Source of the DNA: Anaeramoeba ignava BMAN
Lineage: Eukaryota > Protista > Anaeramoebae
Direction of reading: 5' to 3'
DNA: 64,000 nucleotides
Assembly (NCBI GenBank): GCA_028826165.1
Contig: JAPDFW010000104.1
Span: forward strand, 162,985 to 226,984
Positions 26,631 through 37,757 of the stretch are shown here, in pieces; within the stretch, counting starts at the first letter, position 1; the number at the start of each line of letters is the position of its first letter. The notes beneath the pieces were generated by a model, which did no database searches, was not told where the DNA came from, and worked only from the letters and a program-made list of their open reading frames with translations. Made by a program: the position numbers and the translations under genes.

Positions 26631-29600
26631 ATGAGAAGATTCTTATTCCTTTTAATAACGCTTATCAAAAACAATTAGTTCAAAATTATAAAAAAATAAA
26701 AACAAAAGAAAATCAACAAAAACAACAAACAACTTCAAATTCAACAAACAACAACAACAAAAATTGAAGAAAAACTTATAATTGAAAAAGAATGAAAATT
26801 TCTTTTTGAAGATCTTGATAAAAATATGAAAAATTAAAAGAAAAATTATATTCAATTTACAAAAGAACAAAATCAATCAAAAATTATCAAAATTTAAAGA
26901 AATTAATTTATTATTTTATTATTGTTTTTCTTATAATTCACTTTCCAAATACAAAATTAAATCAGTAAAAATTAAAAATAAAAATTTTAATTTATATTTA
27001 TATTTAAATTTATTTTAATTTAGGTTTGTTATCAATCTCAATTTTCAAATATTTTATCACAAAGAATTTCTTCAATTTTTCAAATTTCTTTTCTATTCAA
27101 AATCCATCTCAAATCAATTCTATTGAATTAATGAATTTTATTTTTAAAACAAAGAGAAGAAAATATTGTTGAATTACTTTCAAATATTTTATATATAAAT
27201 CTCAAAATTGATAAAAACAAAATATTCATTTCTGATAAAATTATTGAAAAGTTTCTTAAATTAATAGAAATAATATCAAACTTTGATAAACTTGTTTTTG
27301 ATTATGATAATTTAAATTCAGAAGATGATATTTTTATTGATAATTCAAAAGAAGAAGTTGATGATGATTTTATAAATTTGGAAAATCAAATTGGAGATTT
27401 AAATAATAATGAAAATCAAGAAATTGATGTTGAACCTATTACAGAAATAAATATTGGAGAGGAAATTATTTATATTAATCTTGAAAATGAAAATTTATTG
27501 AATAAAAAAGAATCACCTAAAAATCAATTAAAATCTATTGATTATTCAACATCTCTTTATAACGATATGAAAGGTAAATTTATTTTATTTATTTTATTTA
27601 AATTTATTTTAATTTATTTAAATTTATTTTATTTATTTTATTTAAATTTATTTTAATTTATTTAAATTTATTTTATTTAAATTTATTTTATTTAAATTTA
27701 TTTTATTTAAATTTATTTTATTTAAATTATTTAAATATATTTTATTTAAATTATTTTAATTTATTTTTATAATTTTAGGTCAAAAACTCTTTTCAAAAAT
27801 TACACATTTAATTTTGGAAATTGAATTGAAATTATGTTCTTCAAATGATATTATTCAATATTTACTTCAACAAAATGCTTTGAAACCTTTTTTTGATTTA
27901 TTATTACAATTCAAAACTAATCAAAATGAAGGAAAAAGAAATTTTTTGATTCAATACATTTCAATAATTCAAAAACTTATCCAAAACAAGAATTTTAATT
28001 TAAAATTAATTAAATTTATTGAAGTTGAGAAAATTATTCAAGAAATTCTTAATCATTTAAATTCAACAAAAATCAGTTGAAATTACAAATGTTTTTATTA
28101 TTTGCATCCTTTTTACAAATTTTAATAATTCTTTTTCTTTAACAAGTTCTTTATATGATATATTTAACAAGAACAATGGATATTCAATTTTATTAACATC
28201 AATTAATCAAGTTTTCAAAAATGAAAAGTTCCATTTAAATTACATTTCAAATATGCTTTATTATTTAAAAGAACTTGTTTTTGAAATTGAAAAAGTGGAA
28301 AGCAAAAATATTAAAAACGAACAAGTTTCAAATGAATTTAAAATTACAAATATTGATGCTTTTTAGAATATTACAAAAAGTTTTCTTTAATAATTTAGAT
28401 TCAGTAAAAGTTGGATTACTTTCTTTGTATTTTAAGTATTATTGTTGATATTATTAATGAGAACCTTATAATTATTATTTAGTTCATTCAGAAACTATTG
28501 AACAATTTTTGAAAATTTAGATTTTTTGATCAAGAATTACAAGTAAAAAATTAAAAATAAAAATAAAATTAAAATTAAAATTAATTAAAAATAAATTTTA
28601 GATTATTATACTCAGTATTTTTACAACATTAGCTAAAAAGAAGCAAGAAATTCCACAAAGTGATGTTGAAGAATTAATTGGATTTATTCAAGAAAAACAT
28701 TCAGCAAAAACATTTGAAGTTATATTAAATCTTTTTAATGATTTAATGAAAATTGATCCAAAATATAAATCAATTTTATCTAAAGCCAAATTAATTGATG
28801 TTAATATTTATCATTGTAAAAGATTATTATCGATTTTCGAACAAAATTTACAAGATAATTTACAAGATAATTTACAAGATAATTTACAAGATAATTTACA
28901 AGATAAAGAAGAAGATTTAATTATATTTGAAGATGAAAATTTAAATGAAAATTCAAATCAAAATTCAAATCAAAATTCAAATCAAAATTCAAATCAAAAT
29001 TTAAATGAAAATTCAAATCAAAATTCAAATCAAAATTTAAATCAAAATTCAAATCAAAATTTAAATCAAAATTCAAATCAAAATTTAAATCAAAATTCAA
29101 ATGAAAATTCAAATCAAAATTTAAATCAAAATTCAAATCAAAATTTAAATGAAAATTCAAATCAAAATTTAAATCAAAATTCAAATCGAAATTCAAATCA
29201 AAATTTAAATCAAAATTCAAATCAAAATTCAAATCAAAATTTAAATCAAAAATTAAATTCGATTCACAATTATTCAACTCTTTAATGAGAAATATGGATA
29301 ACTTATTATATTACTTCCTGAAAAATATTGATACTTTCTTAAATTTAAATGGAAAAGAATTCTTATTTGAAGTTATCAATTATGAACAACTTAGTTCTCA
29401 AACTCTTAAACTTTTTCAAAAATTATTCTTAGTGATTATGAAGAAAAGGAAATATTTATAGAGAATTATTTGATTTTGCGAAATCTAAAAAGATATGAAA
29501 ACTTAAAAATGACAACTGAATTTATTATTATTACTTCTTCAATTTTCAAAAGAAAAACTTTAAATTCCAAAAAATTTTTGTGAAAATGAAGGATTTAAAT

Positions 29601-32600
29601 ATTTCTTTCTTGATTTAATTTCATACAATTTCAAAAATACCAAATATCGAATCTTATGATTTACGTTTATAAACTCAACTTTTAAATTAATAATAGCATT
29701 ATCAAAATCAAAACACAGAAAAATTTATCAAAAACAAATATTACCACTTTTTACCTAAATCAATTTTACAAGCAAGAACATTAACTAATGAACAAATATC
29801 AAATTTAACAAATCTTCTTTTATCGCTTTCATTTGAAGATTTAACATCATTTCAAGATAAAGAATCAAATCAACAAATCATAATATCTCATTATCAACCA
29901 ATTTCAGCTTGTCTTGTTTTAATATCTAAATTACCACAAGAAAACAAATTGATTTCTTTCAAAAATTCAATATTTAACATTAAAAACACATTAAAAAAAC
30001 ATTAGAAAAATTGGAAAAGCTCAAACTTGTATCATCATTTTCAAAAATTTCATTCAATTTAATTAGACAACCATCTAATTTTAGAACCATTTTATTCCAA
30101 ATTATCCAAAATGTTCAACCATATTGTTCATCAATTTCAAGTTTAAAAACATTTCATTTCATTTCTTTCCAAAACCAAATGAACTCAAAATTATTATTGG
30201 AATACTTCGATATAATCAGAAAGGGAAACACACCAAGATTTTTACAATTTATGAGAGAATCAGGATACGGGGGAATATTTTGATTGATTCATTAAATCCT
30301 AAACTTTGCCACCACAAAGAAAATGGATATACTTTTTCATGTTGGATATATTTTTGATTATAACAAAAAGAAAAATGAAAGATAAATATTCACATCAAAT
30401 CCGAATCTTTTTCATTACAAAAATCAAGATAAACAAATCGTAAAATATCAGGATTTATTACGTGAAAATTTTATCTTAGAATATCAATTCAAACATTTGC
30501 ATGTTTTGATAAATTCAATTTCGAACAAAAGAAAATGGTATCATTTGATTTTAACACATTCAATATTCAAGAATATCACAAAGTATTGCAATTATATGTT
30601 AATGGATGTTTTGTCAAGAATGTAAAGCACCTGCTATCCTTCATCTTCAATATTACCTTTTTAAAATGCATTTTTGGAACTTTATCAAGACAAAAACAAC
30701 CTTTATGATTTAATGTGGAGAATATCACAAATTTACATTCAAACAAAACACAATTTCACCCTTTGATGCAAACAACACTTTATCTTATGGAATCAAATTT
30801 TTATCATGGATCTTTTTGGATAATTCAATTCTTCCCAAATTATCATTTGAATTTAAATTCAGATTGTTTCAATCAACTCAACAAAAATTCAGAGAGATTA
30901 AAAACAATTTTGGTTATTTGATTTTCACCTCTTTCTTCCATTGAAAAAGAAAATATATTTTATTTGCATTTGATGCTTATCATTGTGAAAAAAGAAAATT
31001 AAAAAAGAAAAAGATGTTCTTATTAATCTTTCAGATAACCAAGAAACAGGAGATATGTTATATTATTCTTGCAGAAAATGTAACTTTTTACAGTGAGAAA
31101 TGGATTTATTTTTCAATTCCATGATATTAATTCACTTTCCAAATGTTTTTGTTTTTTTTATTTGAAAACGCCAAAGATGAAAATGAATTAACACATTACA
31201 TTTTTATTATTTAACGAATTGGTGAAAATCAAACGCAATAAATTTCAATCAATCTATTGAATTTGATTCATTAAATTTATTCCATTATGCACTTAAAAAC
31301 AAACGCAAAAAATATTTTGTATTGATAATATTCAATTATTATTTTGAATTAATTTTGCATTAAAAAGTAAAAATCGATAATCCAAATTCAAATATTGTTG
31401 TAATTCATCTTGCAATTTTAAAAACACTTGAAAAATGTTTTTTTATTCAATTCAAAGAAGAAGTTCAAAAACCATTTTCAGTTAACATTGATTCCTTAAT
31501 TTTCCCAAATCCCAAATCTATTTTCAATATTGAACAATTATCAAAAATTTAATTTAATGTTATTTGGATTTAATTGATACTGAAACAAATAAATTTGTTG
31601 TTTGTGAATATTTGTATTTGATTTGATTCAAAAAATTATTACATCAATGAATCGTCTGAATCAAAAAGAAGAAATTAGAAATTATAAAATTTTATTGCAA
31701 TAAATACTGGAAATACAAGCCAAAAACCAAAAACCAAAATTGAAGAATTAACAAGAAAAGAAGTAAGATCAATTTATTTATTATTAAATGTTGTTTTTGA
31801 AATTTTGCACGAATTGATTAAAAACTCAAAAGAAAACCAGAAATGAAATGAAATTACATTTAATGTGTTTTGAATTGATTGAAGGATTATTGCTTTTGAA
31901 TCAACAAAACCAATACTCCAATAATATTACTAATATTTTTGAAATATTCAATCAATTCTCTTATTGGAAAATAACAATCTAAACAAATTTATAAATAATA
32001 ATTCATCAATGAAGAAAATTGTGTTTAAAAAATTCAAAAATTTCTTTGAAATATTCAGCAATTTATTATTGATTTTCTTGTTTTATTTTTGTATTCCAAA
32101 CAATGAAATTATTCAAAAGACAAAGAATTTGATGATGAAGTTAGATCTTTAAATTTGAAAAACTTAAAAAAAAATCAAATTTGAAAACTAAACAAATCAA
32201 AAATTTATTCAAAACTTCATTTATTCAAATTTTAAACACTTTTATCAGAAAATTATATTAGAACATTATTTAGAAATTGAAATTTTTAAAAACAAATGAT
32301 ATTAATGATAATCAAGAAAAAGAAATAAAAACCAATTAAAGGAAAATGATTTTCATTTCAAAGTTATAAATGAAAAAAAACTTTAAATTTTTCAAAAAGT
32401 TTTAAATTATTCAAGTAGGCTCAAAAAGAATATTGTAGAAAAAACAGTTTCTCCAATTTTATTCATTTCAATTCCATTAATATCTTCTCATTTTATCAAT
32501 TTAAAAATGAAAATGAAAAAGAAAAATATTTTATTCAAAAATGGGGAATTATAAATCAGAAGATTTTACAACATAGTATTATAATTCAAACTCTTGAAGA

Positions 32601-35600
32601 AACACAACAAAATAAATTCCTTTTTAACAGTTATTTATGAATTATTTAATTCAAAACAAATTTACAAAAGAAATACGAAATGAAATTCTTTACTATTTGA
32701 TTCAGAAACTTCAAAAATGATGAAAAATATCAATTTATCAAAAACAATCAATTTTTGATAAACTTATTCAATTCATTTCTTTTATTAGTCAGAAAAGGAT
32801 TTTTAGAAGAAAAAAAAATGTATTAATATTGATTTATTTGTTTGTTTACTTAAAATTATCATTCAAAAAAAAGGAAATAAGAATATTAAACAAATTCAAA
32901 ACAAAAAGTAATAGTAAAATTAAAGGGAGATCCAAAATATATATCAAAAGTGAATTAAAACAACAAAATTTTGGACAAGATGAATTACTTGCCAGAAATT
33001 TATCAAAAAACTCATTCTCTGCTTTTAATTTCAAGTTTTAATTCCATTATTAATTTTGGACAAAATCATTAATTTAAATCAAGGATAAGTTTATGATTTT
33101 TCAAATATTGAAAATAATGATAAATTAATTCTAATAATCAAGAAGATAATTGAACACATTAAATTATTATCAATTTACAAAATTCCTATTCAAGATTTTC
33201 TTTCATCATTTTGTTATTTTATGTTGGATTTTTACTTAGTGATATTAAAAATTTCCAAAATTCTAAAATTATTTGGGAAAAATTATTTCAAACATTCTAA
33301 AAACAAATTCAAACATTATTTTGTTTTAAAAACATCAAAAACAACAGAAAATTTATTTGATAATTTTTCAACATCTTTTGATGATTCAAATAAATTGAAA
33401 CAATTTATTGAAGAATATCAAGAAAAATTAGAGAAACAAGAGAAATTAATCAAAAACCAGGATTTGAAAAAATTAAAACAAAGAATTCAAAAAGAACAAG
33501 AAGTTATTATTAAAATTAATCAAATCCAAATCCAAAATTTAAATCAAAATGAAAATTTAAATCAAATCCAAAATTTTATATCAATTCAAAATTTAATTCA
33601 AAAGATAAAACAAGAAAACAAAAACAAATTTATCAAAATTATAAATTATACATTTCATGGAAAAAAAAGAAAAATTTTCATTTTGAAAGAACTATTTTTC
33701 AAAATGTAAAAAGCATTTGGAATTGAAAAACCACATTACAAATATAGATAAGAATGAAGGACCAGAAAAGAACAAGAAGTAAATTAATACCAATATTCCC
33801 AAGATTTCCGAAACAAGATGAATTGAAAAATTGGAAAATAATTTTCAAAGAAATGATGAAGAAGAAATTAAACAAAACAAAAGATAGAAAAATGATACAA
33901 GTTATGAGAGTATCAGAATTTATTATTTATAAATCGAGATTACTTTTATCACAAACAAAATGTATTTTGTTGATTATTCCAAAATTTAGAATCAAAATAT
34001 TAATGAAAATTTAATTCAAATCAAATTCAAAATGAAAATGAAAATGATGAAAAAAGAAACATCATTTAATTCATTATTATTTATCAAATCTTGAAAATTA
34101 CATCGTAAAATTCGATATTTTTGCATTAAATTTAATGATATTATCAAAATACTTCCAAAATTTATTCAAAATAAAAAATATCATTTGAAATATTTACTTT
34201 AAGAGGAAAAACAATTTATTTAGTTTTTGAAGAAAATGATTTTGATTCAATTTATCAAATGATTTGTCAAATGGTTTCTAAATGTAAATCAAAATCAAAT
34301 CAAAAAACAAATCAAAAACAAATTCTATTGAAAATATCCAAAAATTAACAGATATAAAATTGATACTGAAAAATGGAGAAATGGAATGATAACAAATTAT
34401 AAATATTTAATGCAAATTAATACTTTATTAGGAAGATCTTACAATGATCTTTCACAATATTTTATCTTTCCAATAATTTTCAAAAATTATAATTCTTTAG
34501 AAATTGATTTAAATAATCGTCAAAAGTTATGTTAATTTAAAAAAATCAAATGAAGAAGAAATTGAGTAAAAATATTTTAAATTTAAATTTAAATTTAAAT
34601 TATATCTATTAATTTTAATTTAAATTTTTAGTTCAAAAATTACACAAAAATTAAGTATTAAATCTTTTGATTAGAATTTTCCCAAATGTTTTCAGATATT
34701 CTTTTAATCAATTCCAAAAATTATTTAAATCAATTCCTAATTATTTTACACAAGAAAAAGAAATTAAATGGAATAATTCCAAATTTTATAATTTTCCAGA
34801 ATTTTTACAAAATATAAATCAATAAAAATTTCCAAATCAAAAGAAAATTTAATTAGAATGCTGAATTACCTAAATGAGTGGAAATAATTCAATTGAATTT
34901 ATTAAAACGAATCGAAAAGGATTAGAAAAACAAAAATAATATGTTCCAAAAATTTGTAATTGGATTGATAAATATATTGAAGAAATTAACAAAACAAGAA
35001 TAAATTCCCAAAAATGATAAATATAGAAAAACATAAAAACGAAGAATAAAACAATACAATCCAGAATTTTATTCATTCCCAAAATTTTTAGATAGTAAAA
35101 GTAATTTTCAACATGGAAAAGCTATTTATCAAATACAGAGAATTGAGAATCAAGTAGCATTTGCACAATTTCAACAAACAATTTTCCCACAAAATTTAAA
35201 CATCATTTACAAATGGAATTATTCAGATCAAACACTTAGAACTTATGATATCAAAGAAAAGAAAACAGTTTTTATTCAAGAACAAATTCACAATGACAAA
35301 ATTACATCATTAGCAATATGTGGAGATATTATTGTTACAGGAGGAGGAGATTGTTGTGTAAATGTATGGAAATTTGAACATCAATCAAAACCATTGATAT
35401 TGTTATCTAGATTAACAGGACATACCAAGAAAATTACAAGTTTGGCAATTTCAAAAGCTCATTCAATAATTGTTTCAGGTTCAAAAGATTTAACTTGTCA
35501 TATTTGGGATCTTAAAAGATTGAGATATATTCGATATTTATATGAATTACAACATCATCCTGAATTTATTCAAATTAATGAAATTAGTGGAGAAATTGTT

Positions 35601-36200: not shown

Positions 36201-36271
36201 TTTCTTTCTTTTTATTAAAAAGAAATTTGAAATTTGAAATTTGAAAATTGAATTTGAATTTGAATTTGAAC

Positions 36272-37757
36272 TTAATCTTTCACAATAGGATTTCCATAAT
36301 AACACCATTTTTGAATTCCAATATTATTGATTCCTCTAACTAAATTAAAAATCCACCATATTTTTATTCCATTGACTTCCCCAACTAAAAATTAAAATAA
36401 AAAATTAAAAAAATTAATTTTTAAATTAAAAAAAATTAAAAAAAACCTATTTCTAATAATCCAATAATCAAGATTTGATTCATCATCATGTCCCCAACCA
36501 ACAACAGAAATCCAATGTTCAAGTGAATTAGCACCAGTTTTATCATAAAATATTTCATCTCCTTGATCCCAATTATCTAATGCTTCTGGACAAGCAATTC
36601 CACAAACAATAGGACTTTTTAATTTAAATTTTAAATTAAAATTAAAATTTTTTTCTTTTAATATTTTTTGACACTTTTTTCTTCACCTTTTTTCTTAATT
36701 TAATTTTAAATTTAATAAATATAAAATACCCATTTTTATAAATTTCATTCATCATTTCTTCTTCTCCATTTAATTGACCCCAATCTGAAATATAATATTT
36801 TGTAGGATTTTCAATAACTGTACAATTTTTATTAAATCCAAAGCATTGTTTGCAAGTATTAATTGGTGTACATTCTTTATCAATAGCTTGATAAGGAGAA
36901 CCTTTATTATAAATAATTTATTTTTATTATTATTTTTATTATTATTTTTATTATTTTTTATTTTTTACAAGTTTCATCTACAATTCCGTTTTTTTGAATC
37001 CAAGGCATTAAAAGCCAAACATATCCTCCATAACAAGTTCCTACACTTGGTGCACAATTTAAAAGATGTTGTGGACTTAAATAAATATCTGGTTCTGTAT
37101 TATTTCTTTTTGATCTTTTTACATTTATTTTTATTTTAAAATTTTTATCCGATTTTTATTTATTTTTATTTAAAATTTTTGATTTATTTTAAATTGATTT
37201 TAATTTTTATTTTTATTTTTATTTTACTTTTAATTCGATCATTTAAAGAACTTGTTGTACTTTTATTTTTTTTTATAAATAATTTTATAAATTATTTTTT
37301 TTTATAATTTTTATAATTATTTTTTATATAATTTTACCTAAATGCCCAACATGATCCACACTAAAATAATATAATATAAAAATAAATAATTAAAATTAAA
37401 TCATTTTTAAATTTTTAAAAAGAAATAATTTTGGTTCTTTTGGAAATAATTATTAAATTACATACTAAAAATTAATAAGATTTTTATTATTATTAAATAA
37501 AATTTAAATAAAGGAAATTAAAGTAAAAAACTAAAATAAATATTTTTACTTGAGGGAGATGCTAATTTTAAAGTTTAAAATTTTGAAAAAAAAATTAATA
37601 AATTTTTTATTTAAATTTTTTTTTTTTTATTTATTTTAAATACTTGTTGTCTTATTGCTGTTAAATATGAAATTCCATTAATGTTTCTCCAATCAAAATT
37701 TACTGGAAGTGAAAAAATAATTGAAAATAAACAAAAATATAATAAAAAATTGATCAT
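36272..37757 (-). CDS. CTSZ: Cathepsin Z/X-like papain-family cysteine protease, ~9 exons including 12-nt and 3-nt microexons
   Basis: Spliced translation LPVNFDWRNING..IRQQ|HLPQ|Y|CGSCWAFS|TTSSLNDRIK..LSPQHLLNC..GIVDETC..EIYKNGPIVCGI..LEHWISVVGWG..YWIIRNSWG. The HxP mini-loop before the catalytic Cys is diagnostic of cathepsin X. Confidence 0.88.

Follow-up and report, generated by a model that had tools for sequence, protein, structure and literature searches.

A three-nucleotide exon very probably encodes a near-invariant active-site tyrosine in a cathepsin X-like gene of the anaerobic protist Anaeramoeba ignava

The 64,000-nt stretch of the A. ignava genome analyzed here (the window) has an average G+C content of ~19% and carries on its minus strand a gene, M0811_11635 in GenBank, for a putative cathepsin X-like cysteine protease. 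The exons of this gene were used individually, and the spliced product was represented by two proteins, namely P0007, the 259-aa GenBank protein of a near-identical twin gene (M0811_11576), and P0122, a complete 260-aa ORF from the EukProt transcriptome of A. ignava (EP01156, a480266_57.p2). In the order of transcription, the features of the gene are the following.

37644..37757, minus strand: exon 1, with the ATG, the signal peptide and the mature N-terminus, up to the oxyanion-hole Gln (…AIRQQ); by translation, residues 1-38 of P0122.
37562..37643, minus strand: intron 1, 82 nt, gt…ag with donor gtattt; from the sequence and exon mapping.
37550..37561, minus strand: exon 2, 12 nt, ag/CATCTCCCTCAA/gtaaaa, encoding HLPQ; residues 39-42 of P0122.
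37465..37549, minus strand: intron 2, 85 nt, with a T-run and tag at its 3' end; aligned with the twin (L002) and the paralogue L003.
37462..37464, minus strand: exon 3, the proposed microexon, 3 nt, tttttag/TAT/gtaattt, encoding Tyr (equivalent to Tyr27); corresponds to Tyr43 of P0122.
37361..37461, minus strand: intron 3, 101 nt, donor gtaattt; from the sequence and alignment.
37338..37360, minus strand: exon 4, 23 nt, ag/TGTGGATCATGTTGGGCATTTAG/gt, encoding CGSCWAF plus 2 nt, with the catalytic Cys; residues 44-50 of P0122.
37228..37259, minus strand: exon 5, 32 nt in the window versus 31 nt in the twin (TTSSLNDRIK).
36969..37114, minus strand: exon 6, with one extra A at ~37110 compared to the twin.
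36730..36901, minus strand: exon 7, SPYQAIDKEC…EIYKNG, 100% self-match.
36447..36614, minus strand: exon 8, PIVCGIAC…HWISVVGWG…WIIRN, with the catalytic His and Asn.
36272..36384, minus strand: exon 9, with the stop codon TAA; frame-broken compared to the twin, with a premature stop after …WNKNMVDF.

Donors across the gene read GTA(A/T) and acceptors are preceded by T-runs, while A+T reaches ~92% in introns 2 and 3. Just past the stop codon (window 36230-36270, minus strand), a short tandem run of caaatt/caaattt is present, and the twin has the same run. Around the active site, the minus strand reads ag/CATCTCCCTCAA/gt at 37561-37550, an 85-nt intron, ag/TAT/gt at 37464-37462, a 101-nt intron, and then ag/TGTGGATCATGTTGG from 37360. 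An earlier note on this DNA had placed the 12-nt exon, the TAT, the two introns and the CGSCW exon at exactly these positions and with these sequences, and on re-reading all of them were correct. It had also claimed that the 12-nt and 3-nt exons restore the cathepsin X consensus QHxPQYCGSCW, which is borne out by the active-site stretch of P0122, QQHLPQYCGSCW.

Several comparisons point to a cathepsin X-like cysteine protease as the predicted product. A Peptidase_C1 (papain) domain (PF00112, E 3e-44) spans residues 17-253 of P0122 and is also found in P0121, the GenBank protein of the window copy, and in P0008, the GenBank protein of the paralogue L003. The closest solved relatives of P0122 are procathepsin X (1DEU, 2.4e-59) and cathepsin X (1EF7, 6e-59), followed by dipeptidyl peptidase I (1.6e-37). 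The three-residue mini-loop insertion with His23 that is found in cathepsin X/Z (QH-x-P-x-Y-CGSCW) is present in P0122, which aligns with 1DEU and 1EF7 with no gaps through the loop (Gln22-His23-(I/L)24-Pro25-Gln26-Tyr27-Cys28-Gly-Ser-Cys31), and the catalytic Cys/His/Asn motifs are shared with the human enzyme as well. One difference from human cathepsin X/Z concerns the prodomain, which in the human enzyme comprises 38 residues and is linked to the active site by a disulfide tether (PMC13257197). This propeptide is absent from the A. ignava protein, where exon 1 passes uninterrupted from the signal peptide into VNFDWRNINGISYLTAIRQQ; the alignment of P0122 begins at residue 16, right after the signal peptide, at 1DEU chain residue 35. 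All six Anaeramoeba cathepsin X-like proteins compared (P0122, P0008, P0001, P0002, P0003, and P0035) lack a propeptide and have a signal peptide followed by the mature N-terminus (LPxxFDWR).

The alignment with 1DEU also shows how the exons are distributed over the active site. Exon 1 ends at the equivalent of Gln22 (oxyanion hole), the 12-nt exon supplies His23 together with residues 24-26 of the mini-loop, Tyr27 corresponds to the 3-nt exon, and exon 4 starts at Cys28 and contains the catalytic Cys31. In human cathepsin X, His23 docks the C-terminal carboxylate of the substrate and Ile24-Pro25-Gln26 wall off S2', while the ring of Tyr27 aims at the catalytic Cys and lines and deepens S1 (PMC9712828, PMC13257197). 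The earlier note had assigned both tiny exons to the active-site loop; this assignment stands for the 12-nt exon, while the residue of the 3-nt exon lies outside the mini-loop proper (PMC9712828). Of 207 homologues, 202 have a loop of five residues with Tyr or Trp as the last one, with HxPx[Y/W] in 200 (198 Tyr, 2 Trp) and MVPLY in two more, and the only length outliers were three GenBank models of A. ignava. Besides these three gene models, the residue was missing in none of the 204 remaining homologues.

The three models are wrong in two ways. In P0007 (M0811_11576, the twin) and in P0121 (M0811_11635, the window copy; 224 aa, ending in NMVDF), HLPQ is joined directly to CGSCW and the Tyr is absent. 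In P0008 (M0811_09329; L003:931-996, contig G000:C80), the donor of exon 2 is read through, so that 13 residues, VCDKFSLINYLKK, are inserted between HLPQ and CGSCW. Two different wrong solutions at one spot are what a missed microexon would produce, and the 13-residue insert is an artefact of gene modelling at this microexon. The expectation in the earlier note that gene finders miss such an exon thus agrees with all three models, two of them lacking the Tyr and the third running through the donor.

The transcript-derived protein P0122, by comparison, differs from P0007 only in having an additional Tyr, which follows HLPQ and precedes CGSCW (…AIRQQHLPQYCGSCWAF…), and all its residues except Tyr43 map exactly onto the nine exons of the twin. 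Together with P0007 and P0121, it makes up the 90% cluster to which the GenBank protein of the twin belongs. The evidence from RNA consists of the translation of a transcript assembled de novo; the Tyr is thus seen at the protein level, and its codon may be TAT or TAC. Among the sequencing runs searched, one entry (X24) shared a notable part of the stretch (0.33), the others being at 0.06-0.07, probably through low-complexity sequence. P0122 fits the reading frame of the twin, and it is not assignable to one rather than the other of the two copies. As another source of the transcript, a third locus encoding this stretch contiguously was considered and rejected: exon 7 has matches at no more than four loci of the 42.8-Mb assembly, two of them at 100%, and since only these two are identical, no contiguous copy is left from which P0122 could have come. 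The Tyr exon is included in this one transcript. For L003, neither searches by word nor a cluster look-up gave a transcript-derived protein.

The splice signals around the Tyr codon are canonical, with an AG acceptor and a GT donor directly abutting TAT (tttttag/TAT/gtaattt). AGTATGT is the sole AG-NNN-G[T/C] in the 189-nt interval from exon 2 to exon 4, and the same holds between exons 2 and 4 in each of the window copy (L001), the twin (L002) and the paralogue (L003). In composition-preserving shuffles, AG-TAY-GT arose by chance in 0.5% of cases for the 189-nt interval and in 1.6% for the 133-nt interval of L003. Over both strands of the 64-kb window, AGTATGTAA occurred once versus 0.24 expected; TTTAG-NNN-GTAA gave two matches in the window versus 0.63 expected, which was not significant. 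We also considered whether the Tyr could be gained by shifting a neighbouring donor or acceptor. This was rejected, because CCTCAA is followed directly by G and TGTGGA is preceded directly by TAG, and no shift of either site therefore yields TAY.

L003 (C80:281124-284288) is only 65% identical in protein, and it has the same arrangement, i.e., ag/CATTTACCTCAA/gt, a 66-nt intron, tttttag/TAT/gtaattt, a 64-nt intron, and ag/TGTGGATCT. In a three-way alignment of L001, L002, and L003, TTTTTAGTATGTAA forms an invariant island within introns that have otherwise diverged. The microexon is at least as old as the split of the twin pair from L003.

These observations bear directly on the possibility that there is no microexon, i.e., that the 12-nt exon is spliced straight to CGSCW, giving a protein without the Tyr, and that ag/TAT/gt is a chance motif. 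Both GenBank models of the twin pair (M0811_11576 and M0811_11635) indeed read QQHLPQCGSCW, and the junction is frame-neutral either way. However, P0122 carries the Tyr and is otherwise identical, and the models are not consistent evidence, since P0008 solves the same spot with a 13-residue read-through. The RNA-seq reads of the genome paper, which lie behind the annotation, were mapped with HISAT2 (PMC11550330). Furthermore, the Tyr/Trp residue is missing in none of the other 204 family members, and the motif is kept in L003 and is improbable by chance in both intervals (0.005 and 0.016). We consider it very improbable that the motif is a chance occurrence, and conclude with high confidence that the TAT at 37464-37462 constitutes a true internal coding exon, 3 nt long, of the A. 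ignava cathepsin X-like gene.

The window copy and its twin (C105:55605-58772) lie as inverted copies on the same contig and are ~99% identical over the gene, with 7 substitutions and 23 indel events between them; in 19 of these indels, the deletion is in the window copy. Within the coding exons, the differences come down to one substitution, which is synonymous, and four single-base homopolymer changes, these being in the window copy an extra A at ~37230 (exon 5), an extra A at ~37110 (exon 6), and the loss of an A at ~36365 and of a T at ~36351 (exon 9). Each of the four breaks a frame that is kept by the twin and by the transcript, and as a result of these breaks the GenBank model M0811_11635 (P0121) is reduced to 224 aa and skips exon 5. 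Given these four frame-breaking differences, the window copy is either a young pseudogene or a copy carrying homopolymer errors from the long-read (Nanopore) assembly.

The duplication extends far beyond the gene. An inverted segment of at least 22 kb is shared between window ~25000-48000 and G000:C105:46000-68000, reaching at least 9 kb on both sides of the gene at 92-97% identity; the flank identity for the segment is 92-98%, with 1.8-2.4% substitutions. Homology over at least 9 kb on either side indicates a real segmental duplication. The cathepsin gene (~99%) is closer between the copies than the flanks are, which may reflect gene conversion or selection. Elsewhere in the duplication, the twin segment (L010) contains a 1951-aa open frame, which on the window side (~28700-34570, plus strand) is broken into pieces of ~200 aa, with ~215 gap openings over 6.3 kb. 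Either decay or unpolished assembly could account for these broken frames.

It could be argued that M0811_11635 is a decaying duplicate in which the microexon is a relic, and that the enzyme is made by the twin M0811_11576 only. The single-base changes that break the frame at four places in exons 5, 6, and 9, the truncated 224-aa model, the real and inverted duplication of at least 22 kb with 1.8-2.4% flank substitutions, and the further long ORFs broken on the window side, such as the one of 1951 aa in the twin, would all fit this reading. On the other hand, all four differences are in homopolymer length, and 19 of the 23 indels are window-side deletions. An early Nanopore assembly polished with short reads typically retains homopolymer deletions where the short reads multi-map. 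The present assembly is such an early one, built from Nanopore R9.4/R9.5 data with ABruijn, Racon, Nanopolish, and Pilon (PMC11550330). In addition, the sole substitution in the coding exons is synonymous, for which selection or recent gene conversion is a better fit than decay. We put the chance that the window copy is decaying slightly below even. The existence of the Tyr exon is a separate matter, and for this we retain the genuine 3-nt exon as the preferred reading.

Comparison of the Anaeramoeba paralogues showed that the position of introns at this spot varies. L004, in the same assembly, is an intronless paralogue in which QQHLPQWCGSCW is encoded contiguously, and it is 100% identical to the NCBI protein M0811_10790; the gene of P0002 is likewise contiguous at the Tyr spot. 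In the gene of P0003, a single phase-1 intron lies within the Tyr codon (T/gtatgc…acag/AC), and in the gene of P0035, a phase-1 intron lies within the next Cys codon (T/gtaaac…atag/GT). The sites compared were L007:1645-1743, L008:1689-6226, L005:1501-1668, and L004:1285-1330. Across the paralogues, there are thus four intron positions within 7 nt (before, inside, and after the Tyr codon, and inside the next Cys codon), which, as far as can be read from the genes themselves, suggests recurrent intron gain or sliding at the Tyr/Cys spot. Repeated gain or shifting of introns at a single place may be how single-codon exons come about. At L007:1730-1743, the 3' end of an A. flamelloides intron reads …taacttaacag, which we take to resemble the branch-site-plus-acceptor motif of other metamonads.

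In a maximum-likelihood tree, for which the 13 mis-modelled residues of P0008 were masked by a single X, the Anaeramoeba proteins formed one group (95/96). Within it, the microexon-bearing pair (P0122 and P0008; 99/98) was sister to a group in which L004/P0001 branched next to a pair formed by the A. flamelloides proteins P0002 and P0003.

How could such an exon be spliced? Between them, the 12-nt and 3-nt exons make up the segment from the oxyanion-hole Gln to the catalytic Cys. With AG and GT only 3 nt apart, it is implausible that factors of the 3' and the 5' splice site occupy the two sites jointly, and we propose for this reason that the two introns are removed sequentially. Introns 2 and 3 would each probably be recognized by intron definition and removed in sequence; once either of them is out, the splice site that remains would be an ordinary one, beside a longer exon of normal size.

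Such an exon could also be a regulated cassette, giving Tyr-plus and Tyr-minus mRNAs, the latter encoding an enzyme with an altered S1 pocket or loop and a distinct specificity. The frame is kept on skipping, a microexon is sterically hard to recognize, and some alternative splicing has been found in most coding microexons of plants (PMC8831610), all of which would be compatible with a cassette. However, the Tyr is included in the only transcript-derived ORF, and with no natural homologue lacking the residue, a Tyr-less enzyme would be unprecedented. We therefore regard regulated skipping as unlikely, if somewhat less so than the complete lack of a microexon, and favor an exon that is included in the mRNA.

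A crude spacing test was run over the whole assembly and told more than the motif count within the window. TTTTAG-N3-GTAAT occurred 156 times (reversed control, 117), compared to 62 times with N2 spacing (control, 180) and 33 times with N4 spacing (control, 119), so that after normalization the 3-nt spacing is in 4-5-fold excess. Among the 100 N3 matches listed, the triplets TAA and TAG were absent and TGA appeared once. Single-codon exons could belong to the ordinary gene structure of A. ignava throughout its genome and be mis-modelled systematically by standard pipelines, with the Tyr exon as the benchmark case, in which the right residue is known beforehand; the chances for and against this appear to us evenly balanced.

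The Tyr exon has the advantage of a checkable answer, with a near-invariant residue, a solved enzyme family, a transcript-derived ORF, and three models wrong in two ways, and it can serve as a positive control for other single-codon exons in A. ignava. Three GenBank proteins (KAJ5069404.1, KAJ5069462.1, and KAJ5072883.1) can be corrected at the Tyr site. The exon also shows that an acceptor and a donor 3 nt apart can both be used by the spliceosome in a deep-branching anaerobic protist, and the order of intron removal thereby becomes directly testable. In the literature searched, we found no paper combining 'Anaeramoeba' and 'microexon'.

The Tyr exon joins a known class, the coding microexons; its lineage is an unusual one, and the residue that it encodes has a defined function. 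Animal neuronal microexons depend on SRRM4-type regulators, and we know of no dedicated regulator for the A. ignava microexon. The animal exons (3-27 nt) resemble the A. ignava exon in size class and in the steric difficulty of fitting the factors of the 3' and 5' splice sites so close together (PMC8378409, PMC4317164). They are, however, tissue-regulated cassettes that rely on exon definition and are flanked by long introns, whereas the A. ignava exon has a short intron on either side, belongs to a unicellular organism, and is included in the sole transcript. More of its features are shared with the coding microexons of plants (1-15 nt), for which there is ample documentation of misannotated exons of up to 15 nt, down to the 1-nt exons in genes such as APC11 and VPS55 (Yu et al. 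2022, PMC8831610). Like these, the A. ignava exon is tiny and internal, is flanked by canonical introns, is conserved among homologues, is mis-modelled by annotations, and occurs alongside gene copies that have no introns (PMC8831610). Unlike them, it is found in an anaerobic protist between introns of ~92% A+T, and it constitutes, on protein-level evidence, a complete codon, that of a near-invariant residue of the active site.
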